From assembly GCA_002269645.1 (NCBI GenBank), contig NIVC01000180.1, forward strand, positions 372,001-436,000: DNA of 64,000 bases. Direction: 5' to 3'. Within the stretch, counting starts at the first letter, position 1; every line of letters starts with the position of its first letter. The notes beneath the pieces were generated by a model. The model did not search any database and had not been told where the DNA came from. It saw only the letters and a list, made by a program, of their open reading frames with translations. This DNA comes from Macrostomum lignano. Taxonomy: Eukaryota. This document shows positions 1 through 46,229 of the stretch, piece by piece. The position numbers and the translations under genes are program-made.

Positions 1-234
1 ATGATGATCATGATGATGTTGATAATGATGATCATGATGATGATGGTGATGATGATCATGATGATGGTGATCATGATGATGATGGTGATGATGATCATGA
101 TGATGATGGTGATGATGATCATGATGATGGTGATCATGGTGATGATGATCATGATGATGGTGATCATGATGATGATGGTGATGATGATCATGATGATGGT
201 GATCATGGTGATGATGATCATGATGATGTTGATA

Positions 235-280
<46 letters not shown>
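1..280. repeat. (ATG)n / (GAT)n imperfect trinucleotide microsatellite, truncated by window start
   Basis: Near-continuous ATG repeat with ATC/GTG/TTG variants; the poly-Met ORF 1..321 is a by-product. Confidence 0.95.
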
Positions 281-839
281 GGACTCAGCCTCCGAACTCG
301 CAATTGAAGTTCAGTAAATGATAAAGTTTAAAAATGGTGATTAGAGATCATATCTGAAGTTAAATGTATTTTTTGAAACTAATGCTGGACTTGCGAGTAC
401 AGCGTCCTTGTACTTTAGAGTTGTCCGTGATGCAGTGTTGTGGAAACTTGAGTTTATTCCCCTAACAACAAAGGCTCGCTGCGCATTAATTCCGTTTTTG
501 TTTCTTAGAAAAGCCGCGCAAGTCCCTGCCGAGCATTTACCGTATCCCGCTGTTTGCAATATTCGGCTCTATAAACATTTTAAACAACTTCCAAATCATT
601 AAAATTGGTTGTTTTGCAAATATTAATTAGACACTTTGACCGCTTGGAGCTGTTCATCGAATGCTTTAATAACAATGTGTAAGAAATATTATATAATACT
701 AGCACAATACACTTTTTGCTATCCAGTCTGATCGAACTGCCGCTTCTGTGGATTGAAAGTACCGTTTCGAATTTTGTTTCGTTTGGGCTGACGTTTTTAT
801 TATTTCCGGCCCTTTAAACAGATCCCGGCTGAAGCACAT

Positions 840-1760
840 GTAGCTCCCGAAATTCGGAATCCCACAATCCTGAATTCTTGAATCCTATCCTGCATTTCTG
901 AATCCAATCCCAAATTTCCGAATTATACAATCCCGAATTTCCGAATCCTATAATACTTAATTTCCGAATCCTACAATTCTGAATTTCGGAATCCACCCCG
1001 AATTTTCGAATTATACAATCCCGAATTTCTGATCCTACAATACTGAATTTCCGAATCCAATCCTGAATTTCTAAATCCAATCCCGAATTTTCAAATGCAA
1101 TCCTGAATTTTGGAATTCAATTCCGAATTTCCGAATTATACGATCCTTAATTTCCGAATCCTAAATCCGGAATTTCCAAATCCTACAATCCTGCAATCAG
1201 CAGTACTGCAATCATGAATTTCGGAATCCTGCAATCCAGAATTTCTGAATCAGACATGTAAAATTCTGAATTTCCAAATCCCACAATCCTGAATTTCCAA
1301 ATCCCACAATCCTGAATTTCCGAATCCTACAATCCTGAATTTCCGAATCCCACAATCCTGAATTTCCGAATCCTACAATCCTGAATTTCCGAATCTCACA
1401 ATCCTGAGTTTCCGAATCCTACAATCCTGAATTTCCGAATCCTACAATCCTGAATTTCCGAATCCTACAATCCTGAATTTCCGAATCCTACAATCCTGAA
1501 TTTCCGAATCCTACAATCCTGAATTTCCGAATCCTACAATCCTGAATTTCCGAATCCTACAATCCTGAGTTTCCGAATCCTACAATCCTGAGTTTCCGAA
1601 TCCCACAATCCCGAGTTTCCGAATCCTACAATCCTGAGTTTCCGAATCCTACAATCCCGAGTTTCCGAATCCCACAATCCCGAGTTTCCGAATCCTACGA
1701 GTACAATCCCGAGTTTCCGAATCCTACAATCCTGAATTTCCGAATCTCACAATCCTGAGT
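840..1760. repeat. 23-bp minisatellite (ATCCTGAATTTCCGAATCCTACA), degenerate 5' part, regular from ~1270
   Basis: Direct reading of tandem units. Confidence 0.9.
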
Positions 1761-2400
1761 CTCCGTATTCCGAATGTCTGACTGTGTTTTGGGGGTTTCC
1801 CAACGCAGAATTCTCAAATCCGGGCCGAGATCTGATCTAAGCCGTTAATTCCTGCATCCGCCTGCCCTGAGTCGCATTGGCCATGACTTCTCATCATGAA
1901 TTCTCCACATGGCGTCCAGCTATTTACGAGTTAGTCTGCGCATGCGGAACTCACCAACCAGCCTTCCAACTGTAATCCTTTGTCTGTTAATATTTAATGC
2001 CTGCAATGCTTGCACATGCAGCGGGTCGCAGGTCACGTGAGTTTGCAGTCTGCTGTAATTAATAATCTCTCACACCTGTGTCAGGTTTTTCAGTTGCTAC
2101 ACGCGCGCCCATGCAACAAACGCACCGTGAGCTGGCGTTTCTATAGCAACATTCAGTACAATACAATATATATTTCTGTGTATACATATTATGGTTAGCA
2201 TATATATTTTAACTTAGCTATTCCTTCCATCGATAAATACATGCATTCGCGATTGTGAGAAGCGTCATCTGCAGCGATAATGTCAGAGTTTGTACAGTAA
2301 TAAGCGGTACATGTACCTGCGCGCCAGCGCTTATTCAACTCGCCAGTCAAATTAATCTTTCATCGCCTTCTCGGCTTGCCGCAGTGTCCATATAGCCAGC

Positions 2401-3126
2401 ATGCAACAGCAGCATCTGCGGCTGAGCTCTGCTGGGCATGGCAGAAAGCCGAATCATCATCAGTGGCGGCAGCACCACCAACTGCATCGGCTGCTAGAGC
2501 TGCCTGAACAGCAGCAGAGCTCGGCCATTGACAATGGGATCAGTAAACCGTCGGAGGATTTCGGAGCGGCTGGCAGCGGCGTCGGCACCGGCGGCAGCGT
2601 CCTCTGGCAGAACTTTAGCCGGAATTTCCGAAGCGCTCTGATTGAAACTCGCCTGCGGGCCAAGCGGCAGGAGGCTGCAGAGGCGCCGGAGGCAGCGGCG
2701 ACGGCGGCGACGGCATCGACGGGTCCGGATGGCACGGAGAGCTGCAGCGTTAAGAAGAGTCCCGGAGTGCAGCAGCAGCAGCTCAGGTATCAGCAGCTTC
2801 GAGCCCGCCGACGCTGGCATCTGCTGAGGCAGAACCTGGGCCGCGTGGTGCAGGCGGCGCAACAGAAAGACGACCTATCTGTCCGGATTGCTAAGCCCCA
2901 GCAACAGCAGCAGCTCACCGGCTGGGAGCTGTTCAGCCGCACCGGACCGAGAATCCGTCAGCAGCTCTACTCGCGCTACAGCTGCGGCCACGGCCGAGTG
3001 ACCGCCGCCCCCGCCGCGGTTATCGTGGACCTGCCGAGCGCTCCCGACCAGCCGATGAAAACTGTCGGCCTTCCAGCGCTGCCAACAGCGTCGCGTAGTA
3101 GGAATCGTCGAGGCAATCAGCAGTGA
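2401..3126 (+). CDS. Uncharacterised 241-aa Q/R/A-rich protein (orphan, low complexity)
   Basis: GC-rich ORF with codon style like the confirmed genes here, AT-rich flanks, acceptor-like TTGCCGCAG ending at 2384. No recognisable domain. Confidence 0.5.
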   Translation: MQQQHLRLSSAGHGRKPNHHQWRQHHQLHRLLELPEQQQSSAIDNGISKPSEDFGAAGSGVGTGGSVLWQNFSRNFRSALIETRLRAKRQEAAEAPEAAATAATASTGPDGTESCSVKKSPGVQQQQLRYQQLRARRRWHLLRQNLGRVVQAAQQKDDLSVRIAKPQQQQQLTGWELFSRTGPRIRQQLYSRYSCGHGRVTAAPAAVIVDLPSAPDQPMKTVGLPALPTASRSRNRRGNQQ

Positions 3127-3740
3127 ATTTGGGGGTAATCACGAGTAACTTCGACTCATGCTCATCAATGCTCATCGACTCGTTCTAAATTCATGAAGTT
3201 TTTTTACACCGTACATTGTAATGCAAAATGCTAAATAAGAACGCGCATTGTTAAAAGCTCTAGAAAATGATAATTCCACTAAAAACTGCCAAGCTGCGCG
3301 CCGACAGCTCTGTCTGCCTGTCTGTCTTTCCCCCTATAGTGTCAGAACTGTGGCACAGTTGGCGGGGCTCCCTACTGGCCAAAGTGCTAAGCTACTGCTA
3401 GCAATTTCTCACTCGCTCTTGCTCTGCAAGTGGCACACTGGCGGCAGCTGAGGGCGAACGCATTGTACAAGAGCTGCTGCTGCACTGCTATTCGGCGGGC
3501 AGCCTGTTAAGGCACTCTATAGAAAATGAAAATGTCTACTTAGCAACGGGTCTCTCTCCGATCTTTTTCTACACCTTTCTATCACTTACTCTAAGTCTTA
3601 GTCCGAGTATTTTTGCCTACTCAACTTCAAGCTCAACTTCATCGAAACGAGAAACTGTTTCGAGTAGATTAAACTGAAAGCTAGCGGCGAGGCTTTTGAA
3701 AAAGTCACTGAGAATCAAGGTCAACATATAACTGGGCAAA

Positions 3741-6631
3741 ATGGACGGAGAAGCAGTGGAAGCTGCTCAAGAAACAGCAGTTGAAGAAGCAACCGAAGGA
3801 GCAGCCGAAGAAGCGGGTGAAGCAGCAGATGAAGCAGCTGAAGCAGCTGAAGAATCAGCTGAAGAAACAGGTGAAGCAGCTGAAGAAGCAGCTGAAGAAA
3901 CAGGTGAAGCAGCTGAAGAAGCAGCTGAAGAAACAGGTGAAGCAGCTGAAGAAGCAGCTGAAGAAACAGGTGAAGCAGCTGAAGAAGCAGCTGAAGAAAC
4001 AGGTGAAGCAGCTGAAGAAGCAGCTGAAGCAGCAGAAGAAGCAGATAAAGCAGCTGAAGAAGCAGCTGAAGAAGCAGGTGAAGCGGCTGAAGAAGCAGGT
4101 GAAATAGCCGAAGAAGCAGCTGAAGAAGCAGATGAAGCAGCCGAAGAAGCAGCTGAAGAAGCAGGTGAAGAAGCAGGTGAAGCGGCTAAAGAAGCAGCCG
4201 AAGAAGCAGCTGAAGAAGCAGGTGAAGCAGCTGAAGAAGCAGCTGAAGAAACAGGTGAAGCAGCTGAAGCAGCTGAAGAAGCAGCTGAAGCAGCTGAAGC
4301 AGCTGAAGAAGCAGGTGAAGCAGCCGAAGAAGCAGCTGAAGCAGCTGAAGAAGCAGCTGAAGAAGCAGCTGAAGCAGCTGAAGAAGCAGCTGAAGCAGCC
4401 GAAGAAGCAGCTGAAGAAGCAGGTGAGAAAGGTGATGGGAACAGGAGGTCAAGCAGGATCATAGCGATAACAAAACGAAGATTAGATATGATTTTATGAT
4501 TTTATTATAATTTTATTAAAGGAAATTAGGAAAAGTAAAAACACTAGGGATTAAAAGTGAAGCTCCACATCGCCATCAATTCTCCCCTCACCCCCGCCCG
4601 ACCGCAGAGCCGCCCCCGGACTACGAGGTCACCCGGGCGCGCATCGACGAGCTGAACGCCCAGCTGGAGATCGAGCCGCTGCCGGAGGAGGAGACCCAGC
4701 GTAGGCCGACGCGAATCCGCTTCCAGGAAGGGACGAACAGCTTTGAAGTGCCGGAGCACTACCACGAGGCGCTTTCAGCAGCGGGCGTGTCGGCGGAGGA
4801 AGCGAAGAAGTACTATCGTACATTCAAGCTATTCGACGCGGATAGATCCAACAGCATCGATGCCGGAGAGCTTTACAGTTGTCTGCAGGTTTCAGGCCAG
4901 GTGAGAGTGCAGTTGGAGCTTACCTATGCTCGTAGCCTAGCGTGTGGGTGTGCTCAGGTTACGGATATTCGTAATTCTCTCTCTTCTGTCTGAAGTTGTC
5001 CCCGAAAACCTGACCAACCAACGCCAACAATCCATGACTTCCACCAGGCACCGGAAAGCCAGGAGGAAATCCAGCAGATGCTGTCGGAGAGCGACACGGA
5101 CGCCAGCGGCAGCGTGGAATTTGTGGAATTCGCCTCGCTGATGTCGCGTCTTTGCAAGCCGGAGGCGGACGTGCGCCAGCAGCTGGTGAGCAGCTTCCAG
5201 GTGTTTGACAAAGACCAGAGCGGCTACTTGGACCGGGAGGAGCTGCGCGACGCCATCTACAGCATGGGGCCGGTGGAGCTTTCCGAGGAGGAGTTCGACG
5301 AACTGCTCAGCGCTGTGGACAAGAACGGAGACGGCCGTATCGACTATGAAGGTGAATTTTAGTGCGCAAGAACACCTTGCTTGCATTGCATTTGTACGCA
5401 AAATAAAAGTTCGAGTAAGAATATAGGCTGGTCTAGTTTGTGCATTCAATTGATTTCTCTTCAGAGTTTGCCGCGATTCTTTTAACTGACATCAATCAGC
5501 TGATTCAGACTACAAAAGAAGAGATGCAACGGAAAGGGTGAGATTTTAATAGAAATTTATTTTTTGAAAAGTGACCATGGCTTTATACTTGTAGTTTAAA
5601 GTACGAGTACGCTCTTTTGCAGGCATCCAGCACACCCGGAACATCCTGAGCACCCTGAGCATCCTGAGCATCCAGACCAACCAGACAAAGAGAAAAGTCG
5701 CGGGAATGGAAGGAAGGGGGCTGGAGCAGCTGCAGTTTCAATCTCTAGGTCTGGTGGAGCTGAAGGAGCTGATGCCGCGACTATAGGTGAAGCTCCAGTG
5801 GAGGAACCATCAGCTGAAGAAGAACCACCCATTGAGGAACCTCCTGCTGAAGAGCCGCCAGCTGAAGAGCCACCGGCTGAAGAGCCACCAGCCCAAGAAC
5901 CACCAGCTGAAGAACCACCAGCTGAAGAACCACCAGCTGAAGAACCACCAGCTGAAGAACCACCAGCTGAAGAACCACCAGCTGAAGAACCACCAGCTGA
6001 AGAACCACCAGCTGAAGAACCACCAGCTGAAGAACCACCAGCTGAAGAACCACCAGCTGAAGAAGAACCACCAGCTGAAGAACCACCAGCTGAAGAACCA
6101 CCAGCTGAAGAACCACCAGCTGAAGAACCACCAGCTGAAGAACCACCGGCTGAAGAACCACCAGCTGAAGAACCACCAGCTGAAGAACCACCAGCTGACG
6201 AAGAACCACCAGCTGAAAAAGATCCACATCTTGAGGAAAAACCAGTTGAAGCACCGCAAAGTCAGGAACCACATGTTGTACCCGCTGGGCAACCAGGTGT
6301 TTTTGTTTCTGTACAGCCAGGTGCTGTGCAAGTTGAACGGCCAGTGGTGGTACCAGCAAATCAGCAATCGGATGAGAAATCGCATGCCTCAGGTGGCATC
6401 CAACTTCAATTCAATGCTGGGGATGATTCACAAAAGCGGAATCAAGTACAGGCCGATGTGAAACAGAAGGACGCTCATGGTCAGCATCAAGTTAAAATTA
6501 AAAGACAGTCTGCCAAGTCTCGAGATGACCGATCTAGGCAGTCATCCGGTGATAGCTTCAAATCAGGCTCTCGGAAGTCGGCATCAAAGCCAAATTCAAA
6601 ATCAGGTGGCGGTTCCAGTGACTCAGATTAA
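3741..6631 (+). CDS. Calmodulin-like 4xEF-hand protein with N-terminal Ala/Glu repeat, HPE repeat and C-terminal (EEPPA)n; ~786 aa; exons 3741-4422, 4608-4900, 5048-5351, 5465-5537, 5623-6631
   Basis: All four introns are GT..AG with consistent phases (1,0,1,2); total 2361 nt = 787 codons including stop. Four canonical EF loops: DADRSNSIDAGE, DTDASGSVEFVE, DKDQSGYLDREE, DKNGDGRIDYEE. Confidence 0.8.
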
Positions 6632-8119
6632 ATAGTTTTGAGAAAAAATGTACGGTAAAACAGTGAGCGCTGTTTCTTAATGCGCCAATATTTATGAGAC
6701 TAAGAATTTAGTTTTTTGAGGACTCAGATATAATTAAAGCGCTTTATGATCTTTAATCCAACCGAGAAGCCAAAACACAGTTAAAATACGTATGGCTTTT
6801 CTTCAAAGCATCGCTCTGTTACATTTTAGCGGCTAAATACTCAAACATTCTGTGTGCTGATAAAATTGCTTGTTATACATGTACATTAATTTGGGTCAGA
6901 GCTGTATAAATTTTTACTAAAAATGATATTGTCTGTTTATTTTAACTTTTTTGATAAATTTGTTGAGATAGTCTTTACCTTAATGGAATGAAAACTGATA
7001 AGTTAACTCTTATGGCTTTTTGAATAGCTTTTAAAAAGGAACTAATTTTACGCAACACCGGAACAACGATTGTTGTCATGGTAATTTGTTTAACTATGCA
7101 GAGACATATTTAACGTTGAAAAATGAGCTAATTTTGCAAAGGGTGTGCACTGCTCTGAAAACATTTTTGCACTATTGAATGCTTTCTTGCTGGTAGCTTA
7201 CTTCTTGTTGTTGGCATTTTTTAAAAAATGCAACAAAAATGACGCACAAACTAATAACATACAAATAAACTATCATTAAAATAATAGCGTTGGCATCACT
7301 TTTAAATGAAAACCTGCCAAATAAGTCAATGACAAGTAGTCATAGGGATTCAAAGGATTTTTCACTGCAGTACGATTGCAATCACTCATTGATCTTCATC
7401 TATGCTTAATAAATAGTTTTATACTAGTTTTGATTAGGTGAATATAATACGAGTAGAATAAAATAAAAATATAATAGGTGTGCATTTTTTAATTCGAGAC
7501 AGTACCTTATTACAACAAAAAGAACAGACTTTGAAGCTAGGATGAAAGCAAAGCTGTAATTCTAAATAACAAATATGTTGATCTATCAATTTTCTAAATA
7601 TTTTGTTCTTATAATAATTTCCAGTGACTAAGTCCAATCAGATGTCTATTAAATATTCTGAGTGCTGATTCACTGCCATGTCATTGAATGGATTTCACAT
7701 ATATATATATATATGTATATTTACTCCTGTACATAGTGTTCTTTTTTTACTAGAAAACTTTAGCAAAAAATATTAAAATATTACTTATATTACTTACGAG
7801 ATATGAATAAACAATTAGATAAATTATTTGCTATCAGTTTAAAGAAAATATCATTGAAGTCTTTTTTTATTATTTAGGTAATAATTTTTTCAAGTAAACA
7901 TTGCAGAACAGATAAAACTTTTTTTATTCTTAAAAATACCATCTAGAACTTGGTAATCTGTTATCTGTTGAGTCCAGAAGGTTATTGTAAATTATAGCAA
8001 AGTGACTAACACATTGTTTTGATATTGAAATTTCAGCTCAAAATCAATTTTTTGAACTGTTTTTTAACCAAAACATATTCCAGACCGCCGAGCCCCAGCA
8101 GCCGCCCCCATCGGCAGGC

Positions 8120-10741
8120 ATGCCGCAGACCGGAGAGTCCGACGACTTCGGCATGCGAGACGATCAGCGCGCCGCCATGGCGGAGCTCGAGCGGCTGCAG
8201 AGCACCAGGCCGGAGGACTGGAACGGTGAGTAGCGCTTCCTTGGCTGCGTGCGACTTACATTTGAATTTTTTAAGATTTTCATCGCATTTTGAGCACCGC
8301 CGCCCCGCACCCCGCAATTCCGCATTGCAGAGGAAAAGGACGCGGAGTTCTTGCAGCTGCTCATGGGTGAGTCTGCGAGTCGATCCGGTCTCGAGCAGAG
8401 GTCGAGCAGGATCATAGCGGTAGCAAAACTAGAATTAGATATGATTTTCAGCTTCAGCTTTGAGGGGTTGGCCCTCATGGGCACGAGATGCAAGACAAAC
8501 CCGTTGCATTACTGCTGTGAGCTACTCAGCTCCTTGATGTACTCGTGGAAGCTTTTTTCAAGTATTTTGAGAACGTTAAACAGAGAGGCACGGCAGTTTC
8601 CATATCCTCTCAGTGTAATTCCAAGAAATAGTCAGGGGCGTCGCCACAAGGGACAGGGGGAGATGTCCCCCAAGTGAAAGCTATGGGGGACATGCCAATG
8701 GTTTGTCCCCTCCGCCCCACCTTGTGACCCCGTTATGGAAATCAACAATTTTGCTTCAGGGCGCCGCAATAATCGTCTGCGGCGCCGAAATGAGTGTCTG
8801 CGGCGCCGAAATGAGTGTCTGCGGCGCCGAAATGAGTGTCTGCGGCGCCGAAATGAGTGTCTGCGGCGCCGAAATGAGTGTCTGCGGCGCCGAAATGAGT
8901 GTCTGCGGCGCCGAAATGAGTGTCTGCGGCGCCAAAAAATATAGGACTTTATTCATGGTAGAATTCTTGGCTTTGCCCCCTCACCATAAAATCCATGATG
9001 ACGGCCAAGGCAATTTTCGGAGAATTTAAACCGAAAACGTTAAAAGCTAATCATTAAAGGTGAAGCTGCACATCGCAAACGATTCTCCTCCAACCCGCCC
9101 GGCCGCAGAGCCGCCCCCGGACTACGAGGTCACCCGGGCGCGCATCGACGAGCTGAACGCCCAGCTGGAGAGCGAGCCGCTGCCAGAGATGGAGGCCCAG
9201 CGTAGGCCGACGCGAATCTGCTTCAGCGAGAATCTCGTCAGCGTGGCGCCCGAGCCCGAGCCGCCGGCTGGTGAGCTGCACGAGGACACGAGCGACGAGG
9301 AGGAGGACAGTGAAGAGGAACAGCAGCAGCAGCAGCAGCAAGAAAGTGGCGATGCGGACGGGCTGGGCGAAATGCCGCAACCGGCCGCCAACCAAGACGA
9401 TGTTGATGAAGCACCACCTTCCAGATTGCCTCCCGCCACCACTGCTGAGCAGCAACAACAGCAGAAGCCGCAGCAAGAGAAAGAAGCATCACAGAAGGTT
9501 GTCGTTGTAAACGGCGGTCGGATTCGGTTCGTCGACAGCTCCGACTTCGAGGCGAAGAACTCGCCGTCGCCCAGGCCGGCAAGTCGGCGCCCGAAATCAG
9601 CCGCCGCCTCCGAGTCCCGCCGGCAACCGCAGGCGCAGCAGCAGCCGCAGTCCCAGCGCCGGAAGAACCGGCAGCAGGCGGCCGCTCGGCCGACCAGCGC
9701 CCCGCAGGCCTCCTTCAGCAGGCAGCAGCAGCAGGAGGAGCAGCAGAGGCTCGAGCTGCAGCAGCCGCAGCAGCAGCACAGCCGCGAGGAGAACGAGGCC
9801 GCCTTCCAGGCCTGGCTGGCCAAGAAGCGTCGGGAACGCGGTGGCAGCGGGCGAAAGTCGTCCGCCTCAACATCTGGCGGCGGCGGCGGCTCGAAGGCGG
9901 AGGACAGCGAGGCCGCCTTCCAGGCCTGGCTGATCCGCAAGCGGCAACAGTCGGAGGCGGAGCAGCGCCGAGCGGAGGCGGCGCGCCGCGCCGAGACTGA
10001 TCGGCGCCGGGACGCAGCGGCCGAGCGCGACGGCGTCAGCTTCGAGCGCTGGCTGGAGGCGAAGCGGGCGCAGCTCCGCCGCGAGGCCGACCTGCAGCAG
10101 CGGCGGCGGACGGAAGAAGACCCGCCGCCTGAGGCGATCCACTCGCCGGAGGAGTGTCGCAAGGCATTCAGGAGGTGAGTCGCGGGCCTGGAGCAAGGGA
10201 GGTCCTGGAGCCCCCGTTCTGCTGACCCCTGGAGGGCTGACACGTCTCGGCGAGTCGCCAGCAGCTGCGTAATCCCTACCTGAGATTACCCACCTGAGGC
10301 TACCCACTTGAGGTTACCCACCTGAGATTACCCACCTGAAGTTACGCACCTGAGGTTAACCACCTGAGATTACCCACCTGAGGTTACCCACCTGAGGTTA
10401 CCCACCTGAGGTTACCCACCTGAGATTACCCACCTGAAGTTACCCATCTGTAATTAGCCACCTCAAGGTAACCTGAGGTCAGTTACTCTGGTTAGTTCAC
10501 AGAGTTAAAAGCGCTGGTGGCACAGTCCAGAGTTCGAATCCTAGTCCATCCCGAACCCCCCCACCCCGCCAGCTGGCTCAAGAGGAAGGAAGAGCAGCGC
10601 CGCCAGGAGGAGAAGCTGGAGCGCCAGAGGGCGCGCATCACTCGCCTGGCGCTGCGCCGCTCACGCAAGTCGCAGGCCCTGGCCAGCGCGTTGCTGGCCG
10701 CAAACTCCTACAGGTACATGGACTACTATGGTTATCGATAG
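8120..10741 (+). CDS. CCDC181: Coiled-coil domain-containing protein 181-like; exons 8120-8225 (frame open back to acceptor at 8084), 8331-8366, 9109-10174, 10573-10741
   Basis: GT..AG introns, phases 1,1,2; 1377 nt = 459 codons. Motifs recalled from CCDC181: EVTRARIDELNAQLESEP..RICFSENLVSV, VVVVNGGRIRFVDSSD, repeated AFQAWLxKK, C-terminal RLALRRSRK..YRYMDYYGY. Confidence 0.8.
8633..9010. mobile_element. Probable non-autonomous DNA element in CCDC181 intron 2, with 7.5 x 21-bp repeat (GTCTGCGGCGCCGAAATGAGT, 8775-8933)
   Basis: Starts CAGGGGCGTCGCCA; internal 10-bp inverted repeat ATGTCCCCCA/TGGGGGACAT (8663-8693); only a weak terminal match at ~8997-9010. Confidence 0.4.
10275..10470. repeat. 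14-bp minisatellite (CACCTGAGGTTACC) in CCDC181 intron 3
   Basis: Direct reading of tandem units. Confidence 0.9.
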
Positions 10742-11139: not shown

Positions 11140-12390
11140 GTCACTCTCTCCGCCTTCTGCCTCTTCGCTCACTGTCACACTCTCTCCGCTCTTTGTCACT
11201 CTCTGTCCGCTCTCTGTCACTCTCTCTCTCCGCTCTCTGTCACTCTCTCTCCGCTCTCTGTCACACTCCCTCCGCTCTCTGCCACACTCTCTCCGGTCTC
11301 CGCCACACTCTCTCCACCCTCTGTCACACTCTCTGTCCGCTCACTGTCACACTCTCTCCGCTCTCTGTCACACTCCCTCCGCTCTCTGTCACACTCCCTC
11401 CGCTCTCTGCCACACTCTCTCCGGTCTCCACCACACTCTCTCCACCCTCTGCCCCACTCTCTCCGCTCTGTCACTCTCTCTCCGCTCTCTGTCACTCTCT
11501 CCGCTCTCTGTCACTCTCTCTCTCCGCTCTTTGTCACGCTCTCTCCGCTCTCTGCCCCACTCTCTCCGCTCTCTGTCACTCTCTCTCTCCGCTCTTTGTC
11601 ACGCTCTCTCCGCTCTCTGCCCCACTCTCTCCGCTCTCTGTCACTCTCTCCGCTCTCTGTCACTCTCTCCGCTCTCTGTCACTCTCTCTCTCCGCTCTCT
11701 GTCACTCTCTCCGCTCTCTGTCACTCTCTCCGCTCTCTGTCACTCTCTCCGCTCTCTGTCACTCTCTCCGCTCTCTGTCACTCTCTCTCTCCGCTCTCTG
11801 TCACTCTCTCCGCTCTCTGTCACTCTCTCTCTCCGCTCTTTGTCACACTCTCTCCGCTCTCTGTCACTCTCTCTCCGCTCTCTGTCACTCTCTCTCCGCT
11901 CTCTGTCACACTCTCTCCGCTCTTTGTCACACTCTCTCCGCTCTCTGTCACTCTCTCTCCGCTCTCTGTCACACTCTCTCCGCTCACTGTCACACTCTCT
12001 CCGCTCTCTGTCACTCTCTCTCCACCCTCTGCCCCACTCTCTCCGCCCTCTGTCACACTCTCTCCGCTCTGTCACTCTCTCTCCGCTCTCTGTCACTCTC
12101 TCTCTCCGCCCTCTGCCCCACTCTCTCCGCCCTCTGTCACTCTCTCCGCTCTCTGTCACTCTCTCCGCTCTCTGTCACTCTCTCTCTCCGCCCTCTGTCA
12201 CACTCTCTCCGCCCTCTGTCACACTCTCTCCGCCCTCTGTCACTCTCTCCGCTCTCTGTCACTCTCTCTCTCCGCCCTCTGTCACACTCTCTCCGCCCTC
12301 TGCCCCGCTCTCTCAGCCCTCTGTCACACTCCCACCACCCTCTGTCACTATCTCTCCGCTCTCTGCCACACTCTTTGCCACACTCTCTCC
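11140..12390. repeat. CT-rich variable-unit minisatellite (TCTCCGCTCTCTGTCACTC core)
   Basis: Tandem 19-23-bp variants; the long L/S/H ORFs across it are repeat artefacts. Confidence 0.95.
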
Positions 12391-12979: not shown

Positions 12980-15480
12980 TCTACTAGAATATTCACAAGC
13001 TATGGAATCTTCACAAACCATAGAATCTTCCCAAACTAGAATCTTCACAAACTAGAATCTTCACAAACTAGAATCTTCACAAACTAGAATCTTCAAAAAC
13101 TAGAATCTTCAAAAACTATAGAATCCTCACAAACTAGAATCTTCACAAACTATAGAATCCTCACAAACTAGAATCTTCACAAACTAGAATCTTCACAAAC
13201 TAGAATCTTCACAAACTAGAGTCTTCACAAACTATAGAATCCTCACAAACTAGAATCTTCACAAACTAGAATCCTCACAAACCATAGAATCTTCACAAAC
13301 TAGAATCTTCACAAACTAGAATCTTCACAAACTAGAATCTTCACCAACTAGAATCTTCACCAACTAGAATCTTCAAAAACTAGAATCTTCACAAACTATA
13401 GAATCCTCACAAACTAGAATCCTCACAAACTAGAATCTTCACAAACTATAGAATCTTCACAAACTAGAATCTTCACCAACTAGAATCTTCAAAAACTAGA
13501 ATCTTCACCAACTAGAATCTTCACCAACTAGAATCTTCACAAACTAGAATCTTCACAAACTAGAATCTTCACAAACTAGAATCTTCACAAACTAGAATCT
13601 TCACAAACTAGAATCTTCACAAACTAGAGTCTTCACAAACTATAGAATATTCACAAACTATAGAATCTTCACAAACTATAGAATCCTCACAAACTAGAAT
13701 CTTCACAAACTAGAATCCTCACAAACTAGAATCTTAACAAACTAGAATCCTCACAAACCATAGAATCTTCACAAACTAGAATCCTCACAAACTAGAATCT
13801 TCACAAACTAGAATCTTCACAAACTAGAATCTTCACAAACTAGAATCTTCACAAACTAGAGTCTTCACAAACTATAGAATCCTCACAAACTAGAATCTTC
13901 ACAAACTAGAATCCTCACAAACTAGAATCTTAACAAACTAGAATCCTCACAAACCATAGAATCTTCACAAACTAGAATCTTCACAAACTAGAGTCTTCAC
14001 AAACTATAGAATCCTCACAAACTAGAATCTTCACAAACTAGAATCCTCACAAACCATAGAATCTTCACAAACTAGAATCTTCACAAACTAGAATCTTCAC
14101 AAACTAGAATCTTCACCAACTAGAATCTTCACCAACTAGAATCTTCACAAACTAGAATCTTCACAAACTAGAATCTTCACCAACTAGAATCTTCACCAAC
14201 TAGAATCTTCACAAACTAGAATCTTCACAAACTAGAATCTTCACCAACTATCAAAACTTCAAAACTAGAATCTTCAAAAACTAGAATCTTCACAAACTAT
14301 AGAATCCTCACAAACTAGAATCTTCACAAACTAGAGTCTTCACAAACTATAGAATCCTCACAAACTAGAATCTTCACAAACTAGAATCTTCACCAACTAG
14401 AATCTTTAAAAACTAGAATCTTCACAAACTATAGAATCCTCACAAACTAGAATCTTCACAAACTATAGAATCCTCACAAACTAGAGTCTTCACAAACTAT
14501 AGAATCCTCACAAACTAGAATCTTCACCAACTAGAATCTTCACCAACTAGAAGCAACTAGAATCTTCAAAAACTAGAATATTCACCAACTAGAATCTTCA
14601 AAAACTAGAATATTCACCAACTAGAATCTTCAAAAACTAGAATCTTCACAAATTGGAATCTTGTAATTAGAATACTGCCTGAGATCTTTGTAAAGAATCT
14701 AGTTTCTGAAGATTTTAGCTTGTAAAGATTATAGCTGGTGAATCTTATAGTTTGTAAATATAGTTCTAGTTTGTGATGACATACCACTTCTAGTTTGTGA
14801 AAATTCTATTTTGTGAATACATTAGTTTGTGAAGATTCTATAGTTTGTGAAGATTCTAGTTTTTGAAGATTCTAGTTTGTGAAGATTATAGTTTGGGAAG
14901 ATTCTAGTTGGTGAAGATTATAGTTTGTGAAGATTATAGTTTGTGAAGATTCTAGTTTGTGAAGATTATAGTTTGTGAAGATTATAGTTTGTGAAGATTA
15001 TAGTTTGTGAAGATTATAGTTTGTGAAGATTATAGTTTGGGAAGATTATAGTTTGTGAAGATTATAGTCTGTGAAGATTATAGTTTGTGAAGATTTTTAT
15101 AGTTTGTGAAGATTATAGTTTGTGAAGATTATAGTTTGGGAAGATTATAGTTTGTGAAGATTATAGTCTGTGAAGATTATAGTTTGTGAAGATTTTTATA
15201 GTTTGTGAAGATTATAGTTTGTGAAGATTATAGTTTGGGAAGATTATAGTTTGTGAAGATTATAGTCTGTGAAGATTATAGTTTGTGAAGATTTTTATAG
15301 TTTGTGAAGATTATAGCTGTAAAGATTATAGTTTGTGAAGATTATAGCTGTAAAGATTATAGTTTGTGAAGATTATAGTTTGGGAAGATTATAGTTTGGG
15401 AAGATTATAGTTTGGGAAGATTATAGTTTGGGAAGATTATAGTCTGTGAAGATTATAGTTTGGGAAGATTATAGTTTGTG
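12980..15480. repeat. Inverted pair of 16-bp satellite arrays (foldback-like): ACTAGAATCTTCACAA arm ~12980-14660, reverse-complement arm ~14760-15480
   Basis: Right-arm unit TTGTGAAGATT(C/A)TAGT is the reverse complement of the left unit; short degenerate spacer between the arms. Confidence 0.9.
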
Positions 15481-16090: not shown

Positions 16091-18293
16091 ATGTCAAAGA
16101 AGCATCTGGAAGACGCACTGCAGGCTGGGCACAGAATCTCGGCCGGGCAGCCGCATCACCAGCCCCGGGGTCCCGTCCGGCTGGAGGCTGGGCCGTCCAT
16201 CGCCGGCTCCCCAGAGGACGAAGGCCTGTTCGCCCTCTGCTACGTCGACGGCGACCGTCGGCTGGTGCTGGGCACCGGCTCCGAAGGCATTCGCTGCCTG
16301 GCGGCTGACTTCGCGGCGGGCGGCGAGGCGGCCGTTCTGGCAGAGGCGGTGACGGTGAAGCAGAACCAGCCGTTTGGCGGGCTGGCGGTGGCCTGCGTGC
16401 GCGGGGTGAGGGCGGGCGATTGCGGCACTCGATGAGCTTCGGGCTGTAATATGCTGTAATTTGCTGCGACGATGCTGTAATGATGCTGTGATGATGCTGT
16501 AATTTGCTGCGACAATGCTGTAATGATGCTGTGATGATGCTGTAATTTGCTGCTACGATGCTGTAATGATGCTGTGATGATGCTGTAATGACTCTGTAAT
16601 GGTGATGTAATATGCTGTAATGGTGTTGTAATATGCTGTAATGATGCTGTGATGATGCTGTAATTTACTGCGACGATGCTGTAATGATGCTGTGATGATG
16701 CTGTAATTTGCTGCGACGATGCTGTAATGATGCTGTGATGATGCTGTAATGATGCTGTGATGATGCTGTAATGATGCTGTGATGATGCTGTAATTTGCTG
16801 CGACGATGCTGTAATGATGCTGTGATGATGCTGTAATGATGCTGTAATATGCTGTAATATGCTGTAATGATGCTGTAATATGCTGTAGTATGCTGTAATG
16901 ATGCTGTAATATGCTGTAATATGCTGTAATATGCTGTAATGATGCTTTAATATGCTGTAATATGCTGTAATATGCTGTAATATGCTGTAATGATGCTGAT
17001 GCTGTGATGATGCTGTCATAAAATGGCATTTCCCGCAGATCCGCAGCCACCCCGACGTCATCCTGGCCGCCGCCACTTCCGGCTACGTCTACAAGGCCGA
17101 CTGGAGCAGCCCGGGCTTCAGCACCGTCGTCACCGAGCGGGGCAACCATCTGTCAGCAGTGGACACCTCGGACGAGCACCTGGCCACGGTTGGCTCGGAC
17201 TGCAGCGTCCGAGTTTACGACCTGCGCACCTGCCAGCCCGTCCGGCAGTACAGCGGCTACCGGGATCTCGACCCCGATTGTCCCGAAGGCCACGCCACTC
17301 GCCTGTTCGCCGCCAGGTTCAACGCCGACGGCCTTCTGCTGACCTCTGGCTGGGACGACTGCGTCAAGTTTTGGGACCTCCGGCTGGCCAGCGGCGACCA
17401 CGTCAGGCGCCTGTCCGGGCCACACATCTGCTGCCCAGACGGGCTCGACGTGAAAGGCGACCGCGTGCTCACTGGTGAGCTACGGTCTCTCAGAGTCTGC
17501 GATTGGGGATTCCCAGAGTCTGCGATTGGGGATTCCCAGAGTCTGCGATTGGGGATTCCCAGAGTCTGCGAGTGGGGATTCCCTGAGTTTGCGACTGTGG
17601 ATTCCTCGACTTTGCGACTGGGGATTCCCCACTCCCCGAGTTTGTGACTGGGGATTCCCCACTCCTCGAGTTTGTGACTGGGGATTCCCCACTCCCCGAG
17701 TTTGTGACTGGGGATTCCCCACTCCCCGAGTTTGTGACTGGGGATTCCCCACTCCCCGAGTTTGTGACTGGGGATTCCCCACTCCCCGAGTTTGTGACTG
17801 GGGATTCCCCACTCCCCGAGTTTGTGACTGGGGGATTCCCGAGTCACTGTTAGGGATTCCTCACTCTGGTTAAATTCCTCGAGTCTTTGAGTGAGATCCA
17901 CGCAGGCTTTGGCAGGGATTCTCGAATATTTGATTGTGAACATGGGATTACCCACTCTCTGAAACCATGCCAACCGTTCGCTCCGCAGGCTCCTACCGCG
18001 CCGGCTCGGCTCTACAGCTTTGGGACGCCAGGCAGTGCGAGGCCCCCCTCACCAGCTGGCCAGCCGACCACGTCTACTGCGCCCGGTTCACCGCCAAATC
18101 CACCGTGGCCTCGGCCGGCGCTCTCAGCCGCTGCCTAACTGTCTGGCCCGCCGCGGTGACCAGCGAGACGTCGCCGGAGCCGCTGGCCCGGCTGGAGCTG
18201 GACTCGGCGGTGTACAGCATGGCCGCGGCTGAGGATGGACGGCTGGCCGTCGGGTGCCGCAGCGGGAGGCTGCAGCTGGCGAGACTGCGGTGA
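16091..18293 (+). CDS. WD40-repeat beta-propeller protein, ~351 aa; exons 16091-16405, 17039-17474, 17989-18293
   Basis: GT..AG introns, phases 0,1; 1056 nt = 352 codons. WD motifs LATVGSDCSVRVYDL, LLLTSGWDDCVKFWDL, ALQLWDAR. Start codon is inferred. Confidence 0.8.
16445..17015. repeat. 10/11-bp repeat (GATGCTGTAAT family) filling WD40 intron 1
   Basis: Direct reading. Confidence 0.9.
17490..17850. repeat. GGGGATTCCC-core minisatellite in WD40 intron 2
   Basis: Units TGCGATTGGGGATTCCCAGAGTC, then TTTGTGACTGGGGATTCCCCACTCCCCGAG. Confidence 0.9.
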
Positions 18294-19610: not shown

Positions 19611-19789
19611 AGGGATCCCGCTGTTAAACCATAAAACCCCTAGCTTGTATAGTACAATATGCGGCAGTGCTACAGACTGTTAGCTCATGCTTCAAACCAA
19701 GATCTACTCAGAGGCCGCACCTGTCCCGTAATTATGAGCGCATTCTCATGGATCCGCTCCTCTATCTGGACGTCTTCTGTGATAGAGAG

Positions 19790-20855
19790 GCTACCAAAAC
19801 TACCTCTTCAACTCATCGATGCCGCCATCATGGCGCTGTATCAGGACACCACCGCCGCGGTAGCGACGCTAGACGGACCGTCGGACCTGTTTAGCACGAC
19901 GTCCGGAGTGCTACAGGGTGACACTCTGGCGCCCTTTCTCTTCGTGCTGGTGATGGACTGGGTGCTCAGGACCGGCCTGCCGACATCAGAGGACAGCTTT
20001 CTGCTGCAAAGGCGCACCAGTAGACGGCACCCGGAGAAGAAACTGTCTGTCCTTGGCTACGCGGACGACCTCGCCCTGCTGTCTTCGACGGCCGAAGGCG
20101 CCCAACGGCTGCTGGACGGCCTGACTGCGGCGGCGGCGAGGGTCGGTCTCGTCTTCAACGCCAGGAAGACCGAGGTGCGACGGTGCTGCATGATCTACCC
20201 GCGAGATTCGACTTCGAGACGGCGACGGCCCCGGGACGGCGCTCCCGAAGTGCCTTCAGTTCGTCTACCTCGGCGGACTGGTGCCGGACATCGGCGACGA
20301 CCTAGCGAGACGGCGCGGCAAGGCCTGGGCTGCCTTCCGATCTATGCGGGCGTTGCTGCTCTCCGAGGCTCTGTCCGACGGCGCCAGGTCCCAGCTGTTC
20401 CAGGCGGTTGTTGAGACCGCCCTGCTGTACAATGCTGAGACCTGGACGCTGACCGGGGCGCTTGGGGCGCAGCTCGATGCGGCGCATGCGGCCCTAGTCC
20501 GCGCCGCTTTCGGCGCCCGCCGCGGCCCTGGTAGCGAGACAACCGAGTCCCTGTACAAGCGCACAGGCCTGACGCGGCCTTCTGCCCTGCTGAGTCAGCC
20601 GCGTCTGCGGCTTGCCGGACATGTCATTCGGCCGAAGCCTACTGCCCAGAGCCGCTGCAGGACGTCCTGTTGTGGACCCCGCAGGGACCGCGCAGGCGTG
20701 GCCAGGGACGATCAGCCCGCTACATCGACCGCCTTTTTGAAGATGCGCGAGCACCCAGCCAGGCGGCCGGGTGTGAAGCACGTTAGAGACCTAGCTCTGA
20801 AACGCGCGATTTGACGCTCCCCCCTCTTGGCCACTCCCGTGGCTATTATTATTAT
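19790..20855 (+). mobile_element. 5'-truncated, frameshifted non-LTR retrotransposon (RTE-like reverse transcriptase)
   Basis: RT motifs GVLQGDTLAPFLF, YADDLALL, LVFNARKTE, then LLYNAETW and RLRLAGHVIR in another frame. Ends with hairpin GCCAC-TCCC-GTGGC and (TAT)n tail at 20844-20855. Confidence 0.9.
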
Positions 20856-21557: not shown

Positions 21558-23258
21558 ATGGCGAAAGCAAAGTTCTTCTTAGCGAGCATTCTGCTTGGCA
21601 GTCTTCTGGCTACGGTTTGCAAAAGCTTTCCGGATGGCAGGTTCATCAGGCTGCTGCCGGAGACTCGATCGCAGCCAGGGCAGAGCTCCGACCTGAGCCA
21701 CTGGGCCAAAATAGCCAAGCAGGACCTGCAGATCGCTACTGACGTCTTGCGCCAGACCAAGGAGAACAGAGCGAAGAACGCCATTCTCTTCCTCGGAGAC
21801 GGCATGGGAGTGCCTTCGATCACTGTGGGACGCATCCTCAAAGGTCAGCTCGCAGGAAACAGCGGCGAAGAGGAGATACTGGAGTTCGAGAGGTTCCCGC
21901 ACACTGGCCTTTCGAAGACGTACAACACGGACATGCAGACTCCGGACAGCGCCGGGACGGCCACCGCCTTCCTGTGCGGCGTGAAGGCCAAGTCTGGAAC
22001 CATGGGAGTGAACGAGCAGGTAATTAGTCGCAACTGCACTTCCCAGCTCAAAGAGCGCAACGTGATGTCGTTTCTGAATGAGGCTCAGCAGCTCGGCAAG
22101 TCGGTCGGCATCGTCACCACCACAAGGATCACTCACGCGACTCCGGGAGCTGCGTACTCGCACACGGCTTCAAGGGACTGGGAGGACGACACGGAAAGGA
22201 ACAGCGACGTGCCGAATGTTAATGAGCGTTCGATGTGCCCGGACATTGCCGAGCAGCTGGTTGAGTACGCCATCAACTATACCGTCATATTCGGAGGCGG
22301 TCGGCTGAAGTTTCTACCAAAGAACGAAATAACAATCGATCCCATTTCTGGAAGAAACGTCAGCGGAAGCCGAAGCGACTCGGTAAACCTCATCAACAAA
22401 TGGAAGCAGCGACAGGAAGGCTATGGACGTCGTCCGGTCTACCTGGAGACTCGCAAGGAGCTGCAAGACACTCCGACGGATCCCAACGCTGCATACTTTG
22501 GACTGTTCGCAATGAGCCATCTTCGCTACGACCTGGACAACCAAAAGGATGGGAAGGAGCCGACTCTGGAGGAGATGACGAGAAAGGCGATTGAGATTTT
22601 GAGTCAGAACAAGAACGGGTTCGCTCTGCTTGTCGAAGGAGGTCGAATTGATCACGGCCATCATGAAAACTTGGCGCAGAAGTCGATGCACGATCTTTTG
22701 GCGTTCGAAAAGGCCATCAAGGCGGCTGGCGAGTTGACGAAACCGGATGACACATTGACAATTGTGACAGCCGACCACAGTCACGTGTTCTCCATCGGAG
22801 GCTGGGGTCGCAGAGGCCAGCCAATCTTCGGCAAGGTGAAGTTCTCCTATTTCAATAGGTTCAACAGCAAGGGCGAAGCGCTCGGCTTCGACGATCTTCC
22901 TTACACACCCCTGTTCTACGGCGACGGGCCCGGCGCACCGGTCGGTCGGCCCCGGGCGAACATCACGGATGTTGACACCGAGCAGGAAAACTACAAGCAG
23001 CAAGCTGTTGTGAATTTTCCAATCGAATCGCACGCCGCAGAGGACGTCCCCATCTACGCTCGGGGTCCCGGGTCGCACCTGTTCCACGCTACCCATGAGC
23101 AGTCGTACATTGCTCATGTCATCAAGTATTCGCTCTGCGTCGGCTCGTACAGGGCGGAGAACTACTGCCTGAGCAGTTCAGTGGGTTTTGTCTCTCCTTC
23201 GATTCCCGCCACACTGCTGCTGTCGGTTGTGGCGGCTTTGATTGGCAGATTCTGCTAA
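21558..23258 (+). CDS. ALP: Alkaline phosphatase (copy 1), intronless, signal peptide and GPI-type hydrophobic C-terminus
   Basis: ILFLGDGMG, catalytic TPDSAGTATAF, VEGGRIDHGHH, VTADHSH, HAAEDVPIYARGP. Confidence 0.95.
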   Translation: MAKAKFFLASILLGSLLATVCKSFPDGRFIRLLPETRSQPGQSSDLSHWAKIAKQDLQIATDVLRQTKENRAKNAILFLGDGMGVPSITVGRILKGQLAGNSGEEEILEFERFPHTGLSKTYNTDMQTPDSAGTATAFLCGVKAKSGTMGVNEQVISRNCTSQLKERNVMSFLNEAQQLGKSVGIVTTTRITHATPGAAYSHTASRDWEDDTERNSDVPNVNERSMCPDIAEQLVEYAINYTVIFGGGRLKFLPKNEITIDPISGRNVSGSRSDSVNLINKWKQRQEGYGRRPVYLETRKELQDTPTDPNAAYFGLFAMSHLRYDLDNQKDGKEPTLEEMTRKAIEILSQNKNGFALLVEGGRIDHGHHENLAQKSMHDLLAFEKAIKAAGELTKPDDTLTIVTADHSHVFSIGGWGRRGQPIFGKVKFSYFNRFNSKGEALGFDDLPYTPLFYGDGPGAPVGRPRANITDVDTEQENYKQQAVVNFPIESHAAEDVPIYARGPGSHLFHATHEQSYIAHVIKYSLCVGSYRAENYCLSSSVGFVSPSIPATLLLSVVAALIGRFC

Positions 23259-37700: not shown

Positions 37701-38537
37701 CCTCAACTCGGCCACGACAGGGATCGCTGGCCTCCATCAACGTATCCGTTCCAGCGCGTATACATGGACTGGGCATACGTAAAAGGCGCTGGAAACATCC
37801 TGGTCATCGTGGATTCCTTTTCCGGCTGGATAGAAGCCTTTCCTTGCCGCGATCGCACAGCTGATTCAGTCATTCAGTGCCTGCGTACCGTATTCACACG
37901 GTTCGGCGTCCCCGAGCTGGTGGTTTCGGACAACGCCCCAGAGTTCACCACTGAAGTGCTCACATCGTGGCTCCGCGCCAATGGTGCCAAGAAGCTCGAG
38001 TCACCCACCTATTACCCGCAGGCGAATGGAGCCGCAGAAAGGGCCGTTCAGACCGTCAAGTCCGCACTAAGGGTCTGGTCTGAAAAAATTACGCACATGG
38101 AGTTTAGCCGCTTCTTGCAAAAGGTCCTCCTGCACCACAGAAACTCAGCCTCTTCGCGGGGCTGCTGCCCAGCCGAAATTATTTTTGGACGGCGACTCAG
38201 AGTCCCGGTGGTGACCAACTTCGAACAGGGTGACAGCGTGATCTATGCGCCAAGCAGCTCCTCAGTCGGCAACCCGGCAAAGTTCGTGATGACGGCAGGT
38301 CAAAACACGGCATGGATCCTCGCTGACGATGGGCTTCGCCTTGCAAGCACGAATCAACTTGCCCCAATGGCCACCCGGCCATGGGAATTCGAGATGGAGG
38401 ACGAAGATGAGACTAACAGCGTGCCAGAAACCGGAAACGAGTCAGTCGCAGGGATTCAGACACCCGTGCCTGAAGAAGCCGTTCAGCTGAGAAGGAGCCT
38501 CAGAAACCGATCCGCTCCTGAGCGCTTTGTGCCCTAA
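34764..38537 (+). pseudogene. gag-pol polyprotein with three lesions
   Basis: Zinc knuckles CRYCGKSH..CSKCGKKNHFSTVC, protease QIDTGAS, RT YQDD, RNase H TTDASK, integrase HHCC and VDSFSGWIEA. Lesions: extra A in the A10 run 34873-34882, TGA at 36805-36807, frameshift near 37520. Confidence 0.9.
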
Positions 38538-45440: not shown

Positions 45441-46229
45441 CTTCCGCCCCCACGCTAAATAACTCTTGGGCCCCTTCTGTCTATTGCAGTCCAATTTCAG
45501 TGGGACCATATCTTCATGTTAACATTTTTCTGCAATAGAAATCTACCTCTGATTTCCCAGACACCATTTTGAGCACTGCTCTGCCGCGCACAGTGTTTCA
45601 CTATTGCCAGTAAATTGTCATCTCCTTTCTCTTCTTTTTTCTCTGAAGCCGGAGCCGCTGTCGCCTGCATTCCAAGACATCGCTAAGTTGGAGCTGCGGC
45701 AATCTCAATGGACAATGAATTCCTGTCTGCTTGCTCCATTTTTTATCTACAGATGTTCCACTACCGGAGTCTCAATAGCATATCCACCAGTGCTTGCGCT
45801 GCAATGCAACGCAGTTTTGTGATTTTTCCCTCGTTTCTTTTTGTCCTAACTTTTGAAGGTCAACTGTGAGTATTTGTGCAGCTTGTAAATCTCTCATAGC
45901 TTTGTTTTGATTTGTCCTGTGATCCGCCTGCTGTTTCTGACCAAGTTTTTGAACAGCATGTGGTTTTTTCTCTCTGTAATCTCTTGTTCTAACTTTTACA
46001 GTTTCCATAGGCCTGTTGAGCTACATGTACTACTAGAGCGTATTCATGTATTTATTTGTCACTAATGCTTAGATTTTCTTACAATCATTGTGCTTTTATT
46101 TCACTGTTGTCAAGGTTGCAATCGTGTTTTAGTGCAATGCATGTAACTTTACAATATAATCTTATTATCTGGTTTCATTATTATCGCTTTATTTTATTTA
46201 TTGACTTGCATTCCCTGTATGAAATCCCA

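Follow-up and report, generated by a model that had tools for sequence, protein, structure and literature searches.

A partial duplicate of a CCDC181-like gene at the start of an EF-hand gene: a predicted chimera in Macrostomum lignano

The window analyzed here is a stretch of 64,000 nucleotides (nt) from the flatworm Macrostomum lignano (NCBI GenBank assembly GCA_002269645.1, contig NIVC01000180.1, positions 372,001 to 436,000 of the forward strand), numbered from its first letter. It contains two genes in the same orientation, referred to here as gene A (3741-6631), which encodes four EF-hands, and gene B (8120-10741), which is CCDC181-like. Gene A harbors a module of 116 nt (4608-4723) that duplicates the beginning of the third exon of gene B, accompanied by parts of the preceding intron. 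Gene A is best explained as a predicted chimera, in which a partial duplication of the CCDC181 intron 2/exon 3 boundary was fused in frame to the start of an EF-hand gene, an explanation to which we assign a probability of about 0.65. The features of both genes are as follows, a slash marking a junction in the sequences and position pairs given here and below.

3741-4422 (+), putative exon 1 of gene A: ATG in good context (caaaATGG), followed by (E-A-A-E)n, 227 codons, with a phase-1 end at CAG/GTGAGA
4423-4607 (+), gene A intron 1: 185 nt, copied from CCDC181 intron 2 and shorter than it
4445-4495 (+), 5' homologous piece of gene A intron 1, matching 8398-8448
4496-4549 (+), AT-rich stretch of gene A intron 1 without a parental counterpart
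4550-4607 (+), 3' homologous piece of gene A intron 1, with polypyrimidine tract and CCGCAG acceptor
4608-4723 (+), the module: 116 nt copied from the 5' part of CCDC181 exon 3, giving 39 codons with the split one counted, EPPPDYEVTRARIDELNAQLEIEPLPEEETQRRPTRIRF
4724-4900 (+), native part of the first EF-hand coding exon: QEGTNSFEVPEHYH, then EF-hand 1, DADRSNSIDAGE; no in-frame ATG
5048-5351 (+), gene A exon 3: EF-hands 2-4; protein P0001 is 97% identical
5465-5537 (+), gene A exon 4: exiting helix of EF-hand 4 and linker EFAAILLTDINQLIQTTKEEMQRKG; P0001 reads across the junction
5623-6631 (+), last exon of gene A: HPE repeats, (EEPPA)n minisatellite (5819-6217), Ser/Lys/Arg-rich tail and stop codon (6629-6631)
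8120-8225 and 8331-8366 (+), gene B exons 1 and 2; protein P0012 has the same junctions
8367-9108 (+), gene B intron 2: 742 nt; the copied pieces come from 8398-8448 and 9053-9108
9109-9224 (+), parental module: first 116 nt of CCDC181 exon 3
9225-10741 (+), remainder of gene B: exon 3 to 10174, intron 10175-10572 (with a 14-bp array), last exon 10573-10741

The EF-hand gene and its CCDC181-like neighbor

Gene A was modeled by hand with exons 3741-4422, 4608-4900, 5048-5351, 5465-5537 and 5623-6631, which give an intact open reading frame (ORF) of 786 codons; each of the four introns has GT/AG ends. P0001, whose model begins at the equivalent of position 5078 and continues into the last exon, has the same junctions after exons 3 and 4. 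An earlier note on this DNA had described the recipient of the module as calmodulin-like, and Pfam agrees with it: the segment running from the module to residue 223 matches PF13499 (EF-hand_7) with 106 bits (E 1.3e-30, cut-off 30 bits) and PF00036 (EF-hand_1) with 88.8 bits in 4 stretches, and the four EF-hand loops are canonical. In an AlphaFold2 model of the module plus the EF core, the latter forms four helix-loop-helix units with a predicted local distance difference test score (pLDDT) of ~78-84.

The gene B model encodes 458 amino acids, is open across its 4 exons and is 96% identical to P0012 over the full length. Its match to PF13904 (CCDC34) reaches 33 bits (E 6e-8), slightly below the 35-bit cut-off, and P0012-P0014, whose UniProt name is CCDC181, have precomputed PF13904 matches. 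Gene B and its copies have a C-terminal CCDC34-type repeat region (AF-WL--KR motifs) and a conserved C-terminus. No CCDC181 was found by sequence among the solved structures of the PDB. Human CCDC181 may carry a similar N-terminal motif. P0016, an automatic model, joins the CCDC181 C-terminus to a WD-repeat region and reverse-transcriptase-like sequence. The regions 3800-5600 and 8000-10400 are eukaryotic in character, composed of GC-rich exons, AT-rich introns and many minisatellites, and protein searches likewise assign the DNA to M. lignano.

Extent of the duplicated segment

Comparison of 3700-5700 with the window by blastn gave two matches between the genes, 4550-4723 with 9053-9224 (90.2% identity over 174 nt, 15 mismatches, one gap, E 1.4e-63) and 4445-4495 with 8398-8448 (88.2% over 51 nt, E 1.5e-12). 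They establish the homology that the earlier note had proposed on the acceptor side and in the 5' part of the intron, and, with the copy located 4.5 kb upstream of its parent in the same orientation, they bear out its idea of a local partial duplication. The same comparison found no further copy of the block in the window, minisatellite self-matches aside, and in 170 kb of M. lignano DNA the block matches only CCDC181 exons, so that, within this sample, it is not a dispersed repeat.

Within the exon, 4608-4723 differs from 9109-9224 at six of the 116 positions (94.8% identity), and the computed alignment reproduces exactly the coordinates and counts that had been obtained by manual alignment. 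The differences lie at 4671, 4684, 4688, 4689, 4694 and 4718, and 4602-4670 is a stretch of 69 nt of uninterrupted identity between parent and copy. Over the 107 aligned nt of the intron pieces there are 15 mismatches, besides one indel of 2 nt, a divergence of ~14%. In a gapped alignment, clear 5' homology begins ~13-22 nt inside gene A intron 1 (4436-4445), not at the donor, and nothing in the copy corresponds to the ~600 nt in the middle of the parental intron (8449-9052). This missing part contains a repeat (8714-8997) that includes a 21-bp minisatellite of 8.5 units (8760-8937). A relative of this repeat, 74-87% identical, lies on the reverse strand of another M. lignano contig, in an intergenic region that is unrelated (L005:6938-7269); the element looks dispersed and is possibly mobile. 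Because the missing part contains this dispersed repeat, the difference in intron length is due at least partly to insertion into the parent, and not to deletion in the copy. Gene A intron 1 and gene B intron 2 are both phase 1 and have CCGCAG acceptors, as previously noted. The GTGAG donor, which had been listed beside them as a shared sign, is uninformative on homology, since all seven introns of genes A and B begin with GTGA.

At its other end, the homology stops at 4723/4724, inside the exon; the parental exon runs 950 nt further, and a homology search found no match between the sequences 3' of 4723 and 3' of 9224. The copied peptide EPPPDYEVTRARIDELNAQLEIEPLPEEETQRRPTRIRF continues in frame into EF-hand 1, in agreement with the reading proposed earlier. 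Upstream of the chimera there is no trace of gene B exons 1-2 or of promoter remnants, at the DNA or protein level, and no other collinear homology was found between the two loci.

Independent gene models with the same breakpoint

Two UniProt proteins from a different, error-prone assembly, P0002 (A0A1I8FI97) and P0018 (A0A1I8F511), both contain ESEPLPEEETQRRPTRIRFQEGT, with the same RIRF/QEGT breakpoint, and with Ser for the Ile and Asp for the Asn of the window. Because the breakpoint is shared and accompanied by small differences, the fusion is not an artefact of the window assembly, and there must be two or more distinct copies of it. Both models use a donor equivalent to 4422. In P0002, PKKQLKKQ/SRPGLRG corresponds to the last 24 nt of the exon 1 array (in the +1 frame, with an indel) joined to AGCCGCCCC, that is, to the junction 4422/4608, and the model also reads through 4900/5048. 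P0018 uses an internal acceptor equivalent to 4663/4664, and its array is about half as long as that of the window. P0002 and P0018 are gene predictions, not transcripts, and are considered supportive. A word-indexed search with flanking unique peptides for further copies of the locus returned P0018 only, a protein with no contig attached to it.

Direction of copying

M. lignano has at least three groups of CCDC181 paralogs (38-96% identical), formed by gene B with P0012, by P0013, P0168 and P0170, and by P0014 and P0015. P0012-P0015 share P-DYE-T-AR--LNA-LE-EP-P...R-RFS at the position of the module. Across paralogs that are only 42-50% identical overall, the residues P49, P51, D52, Y53, E54, T56, A58, R59, L63, N64, A65 and L67 are invariant, as are E68, E70, P71, P73, R80, R83 and F86 further along the motif, and the invariant stretch is always followed by RFS-(E/A)-(N/E)-LV. 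The paralog loci L001 and L005 have a phase-1 cag/ acceptor at exactly the matching codon. The motif is not present in the EF-hand paralog P0023. Since CCDC181 paralogs of 38-50% identity keep the motif, and L001 and L005 keep the phase-1 acceptor, both the motif and the intron boundary are native to CCDC181, which is therefore the donor, as the earlier note had held; the opposite direction, with the EF-hand gene as donor, is ruled out by the same ancestral features. The CCDC181 paralog P0014 is found on three contigs (L001, L002, L003) and the EF-hand paralog on four (g1-g4), copy numbers that agree with the reported three-subgenome structure of M. lignano.

What the EF-hand gene gained

An exhaustive search identified P0023 (BOX15_Mlig028917g1), which is 54% identical and has four assembly copies, as the nearest relative of gene A. 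The N-terminus of P0023, MAAVSAVPEQYYAALQEAGVS, aligns with QEGTNSFEVPEHYHEALSAAGVS of gene A, and its start, MAAVSAVPEQYY, pairs with QEGTNSFEVPEHYH, so that the breakpoint 4723/4724 falls 1-3 codons upstream of the position of the paralog Met. P0165, a 5'-open translation of the P0023 paralog, follows the genomic DNA without a break over the ~300 nt that precede the ATG. P0023 is thus a module-less EF-hand relative of the kind that the earlier note had sought, and, because it has no intron at this position, the ancestral form was intronless there and gene A intron 1 is a gained intron. With this intron came a 3' splice site and 39 additional codons, placed where the start codon used to be.

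Gene A and the paralog share the position of the intron after DYE. Gene A intron 2 follows LQVSGQ (4889-4900/5048), and the intron of the paralog lies after LQ and before VMGQ (L004 ~10160/~11190), so that an intron position that is otherwise conserved is displaced by 12 nt (4 codons) without a change of phase. An ancestral EF-hand/CCDC181 neighborhood was looked for at the paralogous loci L001-L005 and not found there.

Age, selection and class of the event

The event had been proposed to be a young, lineage-specific product of exon shuffling, with an exon under selection. Its lineage specificity is retained, its youth is not. The S, L1 and L2 subgenomes of M. lignano differ by a single-nucleotide polymorphism divergence of 1.9-2.4% (PMC10733133). 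Since the intron divergence of ~14% greatly exceeds this value and the chimera is present in at least two diverged copies, the duplication probably predates the recent whole-genome duplication, being lineage-specific and not very young.

Selection on the exon copy receives no support either. When the six differences are polarized with the second copies, the ancestral state of the module is ESEPLPEEEAQRRPTRIRF; the gene B of the window carries private changes from E to M (2 nt) and from R to C, so that three of the six nucleotide changes are parental. The chimera lineage has a change from A to T in both copies and one from S to I that is private to the window, and the one synonymous difference (CCG/CCA) is unpolarized. 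By the Nei-Gojobori method, there are 5 non-synonymous differences in 88.3 sites and 1 synonymous difference in 28.7 sites, with an omega of ~1.65 that is not significant; the 116-nt block, for which this calculation had been suggested as a check, shows nothing that would indicate purifying selection on the copy. The gap between exon and intron divergence (6/116 versus 15/107) is marginal (Fisher p=0.037). This gap and the identity at 4602-4670 could reflect constraint, gene conversion or chance.

Regarding the class of event, because the 3' breakpoint lies inside the exon, it is a partial-exon fusion, and not the shuffling of a symmetrical exon; homology ends at 4723/4724 and no whole exon moved, hence the former label of exon shuffling has to be given up. 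A retroposed chimera is discarded as well: the copy retains stretches of the parental intron from its 5' and its 3' end, and since intron sequence was copied the event was DNA-based. The present arrangement may have originated in either of two ways, from a short segment inserted at the start of the EF-hand gene, or from a larger tandem duplication that was later eroded and overwritten by the minisatellite.

Proposed origin and predicted transcript

The frame of the EF-hands has a stop codon at 4553-4555, is open from 4556 throughout exon 2 and has no in-frame ATG until 5078, and therefore translation of EF-hand 1 requires an upstream exon spliced to the acceptor within the copied segment. The acceptor at 4607 has 15/20 pyrimidines and CCGCAG, like the parental one. 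The spliced leader (SL) that is trans-spliced to M. lignano transcripts has been described and includes an ATG (PMC8629364). SL trans-splicing at 4608 was discarded as the source of a start codon, since the SL ATG would be out of frame and give an ORF of 16 codons, so that cis-splicing from an upstream exon is required. The minisatellite exon at 3741-4422 is the sole candidate for this exon, and its E-A-A-E frame ends in phase 1, fitting the phase-1 acceptor. It consists of a GAA/GCA/GCT minisatellite (tandem repeat period 12/33), whose array holds 12 additional CAG/GTGAA donor-like sites, all of them phase 1 in the same frame, so that the repeat unit, and not CCDC181, may be the origin of the donor at 4423. 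We infer that a young minisatellite of variable length came to serve as the first exon.

The current model proposes that, in the M. lignano lineage, a partial duplication at the DNA level copied a CCDC181-like intron 2/exon 3 boundary, of which ~110 nt of the intron remain together with 116 nt from the beginning of the exon, joined in frame to the coding start of a four-EF-hand (calmodulin/troponin-C-like) gene. The copied intron end would have provided a ready-made 3' splice site, and the upstream GAA/GCA minisatellite an ATG and phase-1 donors, with loss of the old start codon. The predicted product of 786 codons would contain an acidic (EAAE)n segment, 39 CCDC181 residues, four EF-hands and a repeat-rich tail, provided that the mRNA is made and spliced 4422/4608, and exon 1 translated in the EAAE frame, as the gene structure suggests.

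An intact ORF of 241 codons (2401-3126; GC content at third codon positions, GC3, of 0.72; no Pfam match) lies 615 nt upstream of the gene A ATG. Given SL trans-splicing, it could be a separate upstream gene that perhaps forms one operon-like unit with gene A; the P0018 model fuses this ORF to gene A.

Coding evidence and alternative explanations

GC3 is 0.95 in the module, 0.66 and 0.83 in the EF-hand exons and 0.46 in exon 4; in the last exon, it is 0.32 before the (EEPPA)n array, 0.08 within it and 0.34 in the tail, and in gene B it is 0.81-0.92 throughout. The (GAA GAA GCA GCT)n and (GAA GAA CCA CCA GCT)n arrays of gene A are weakly similar to each other (68% over 278 nt).

Several observations weigh against the chimera as a translated gene. 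Exon 1 has a GC3 of 0.06, non-native when compared with the 0.66-0.95 of the EF-hand exons and module, and its ORF is weak evidence because the minisatellite lacks stop codons in two of the forward frames and on the reverse strand as well. Five of the six exon differences are non-synonymous. AlphaFold2 models the module with low confidence (pLDDT 29-53) and predicts it to be mostly disordered, with a weak helix at module residues 6-19 followed by disorder. Protein searches returned no NCBI protein (Mlig_3_7, transcript-based) for gene A or gene B. The P0002 and P0018 models are automatic and frame-shifted, come from an error-prone assembly and use different acceptors (4607 versus 4663). The codon usage of exon 1, the omega of the module, its predicted disorder and the lack of a transcript-derived protein for gene A among the search results, together with the start of P0001 at the equivalent of 5078, would fit a module that is a real duplicate but non-coding, situated in a 5' leader, an intron or a decaying 5' end, with an EF-hand gene that begins at Met 5078 without EF-hand 1, or that is a pseudogene in progress. 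This explanation is credible but unlikely, in view of a frame that is open from 4556 to the end of exon 2, a canonical EF-hand 1 (DADRSNSIDAGE) that can be aligned to the paralog, a fusion that is in frame and keeps a strong acceptor, and an arrangement retained in at least two diverged copies. A coding module could also belong to another 5' structure, in which exon 1 is read in a Lys/Gln/Leu frame (ATG 4132; AAG/CAG/CTG) and spliced from 4422 to 4663/4664, so that only the last 20 module residues, LEIEPLPEEETQRRPTRIRF, are included. P0018 reads ...KKQL/ESEPLP, which is that junction, and the combination is in frame in the window. This +1 (K-Q-L-K) frame has native-like GC3, but it meets a stop codon at 4105 and does not fit the phase of the 4607 acceptor. 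With 9/20, compared with 15/20 at 4607, the polypyrimidine tract before the 4663 acceptor is poor, CCDC181 does not use this acceptor, and P0018 is frame-shifted, its model probably compensating for assembly indels; we consider this structure quite improbable.

Two further proposals concern the history of the locus. Ongoing gene conversion between parent and copy, instead of selection or recent origin, would account for the 69-nt identity at 4602-4670: all six exon differences fall in the last 53 nt of the module (P ~0.009 under uniformity), synonymous sites are identical too, and parent and copy lie 4.5 kb apart in the same orientation. However, the numbers are very small, and identity is only 84% in the flanking intron piece, where beyond 4601 the tract shows no sharp boundary. 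Gene conversion, which we think rather improbable, would modify the partial duplication described above and not replace it. Finally, the arrangement could be due to a mis-join, the assembly being highly duplicated and partly chimeric, with 36% of the Mlig_3_7 length in scaffolds that are chimeric between subgenomes (PMC10733133). The chance of such an artefact is close to negligible: the two copies are 10% diverged and not identical, the RIRF/QEGT breakpoint recurs in P0002 and P0018 from a different assembly, and the join is in frame with intact splice signals.

Relation to known systems

The formation of chimeric genes by partial duplication is well documented, and in that sense gene A opens no new question by itself. 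Sdic and the partial and chimeric duplicates of C. elegans are examples of it. Hun Hunaphu of Drosophila is also a young chimeric gene that arose by partial duplication at the DNA level (PMC1463047). As in these cases, a parental fragment was duplicated nearby and fused to other sequence to give a new ORF, the parent remained intact, intron sequence was copied, and non-coding or unrelated sequence would have been recruited as an exon. Gene A departs from them in that its fragment is tiny (39 codons plus a splice acceptor) and would serve as an N-terminal adaptor on an otherwise complete EF-hand gene, in that its presumed first exon is a minisatellite, and in that it is known here from gene models. 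What is distinctive in gene A is the gained intron, the replaced start codon and the minisatellite first exon. Its phase-1 intron and acceptor traveled with the coding piece, the relevant introns all being phase 1, as in classical 1-1 exon shuffling, whereas only its 5' breakpoint is intronic and a partial exon was joined to coding sequence or to a 5' untranslated region.

Among the relatives of the recipient, gene A shares with P0023, calmodulin and troponin C the four canonical EF-hand loops, and with P0023 two intron positions (one of them shifted 12 nt) and a similar basic, Ser-rich tail. It differs from P0023 (54% identity) by its N-terminal extension of 266 residues, its extra intron and its (EEPPA)n tail array. 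As for the donor, CCDC181 was reportedly described by Schwarz et al. in 2017 as a protein of the sperm flagellum and the motile cilium. Gene A has only the 39-residue N-terminal motif and none of the C-terminal HOOK1-binding region; because the C-terminal region is absent, it is not a functional member of the CCDC181 family. In the mouse, CCDC181 is a protein of the sperm flagellum and motile cilia that is needed for flagellum biogenesis, with the HOOK1-binding region at C-terminal amino acids 393-448 and an N-terminal part whose function is stated to be unknown (PMC11491787).

It is tempting to speculate that the 39-residue motif is a docking peptide and brings a calcium sensor to the partners of CCDC181 in cilia or sperm flagella, a role that we regard as improbable. 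If it were true, three rare steps, intron gain by segmental duplication, replacement of a start codon by a splice acceptor and exonization of a minisatellite, would be seen together. If the chimeric mRNA were confirmed, gene A would provide a clean, datable flatworm example of how a very small partial duplication rebuilds the 5' end of a gene. Since M. lignano has three recently diverged subgenomes and is open to transgenesis (PMC5730564) and RNA interference, one could test directly what became of the chimera in each subgenome and what the motif does.

Other features of the window

Two tandem intronless ORFs at 21558-23258 and 26660-28351 encode alkaline phosphatases of 566 and 563 amino acids (PF00245, E 2e-129 and 1e-132) and are highly similar, constituting a local tandem gene duplicate. 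The coding region of a long-terminal-repeat retroelement of the Ty3/gypsy type, with long and mostly open ORFs, occupies 34882-38537, with protease and reverse transcriptase at 34882-36807, a middle ORF at 36832-37617 and integrase at 37443-38537. The window also contains a WD40-repeat exon (17159-17647), a fragment of a non-LTR-like reverse transcriptase (19659-20814) and the first exon of a Ras-family GTPase (43117-43330). Mini- and microsatellite arrays are very dense (1-280, 845-1765, 10278-10450, 11161-12374, 12983-14000+, 46056-46817 and 48336-49218), with periods of 3/15, 23/46, 14, 21 and 16 nt among others, and several of them yield long spurious ORFs in several frames.

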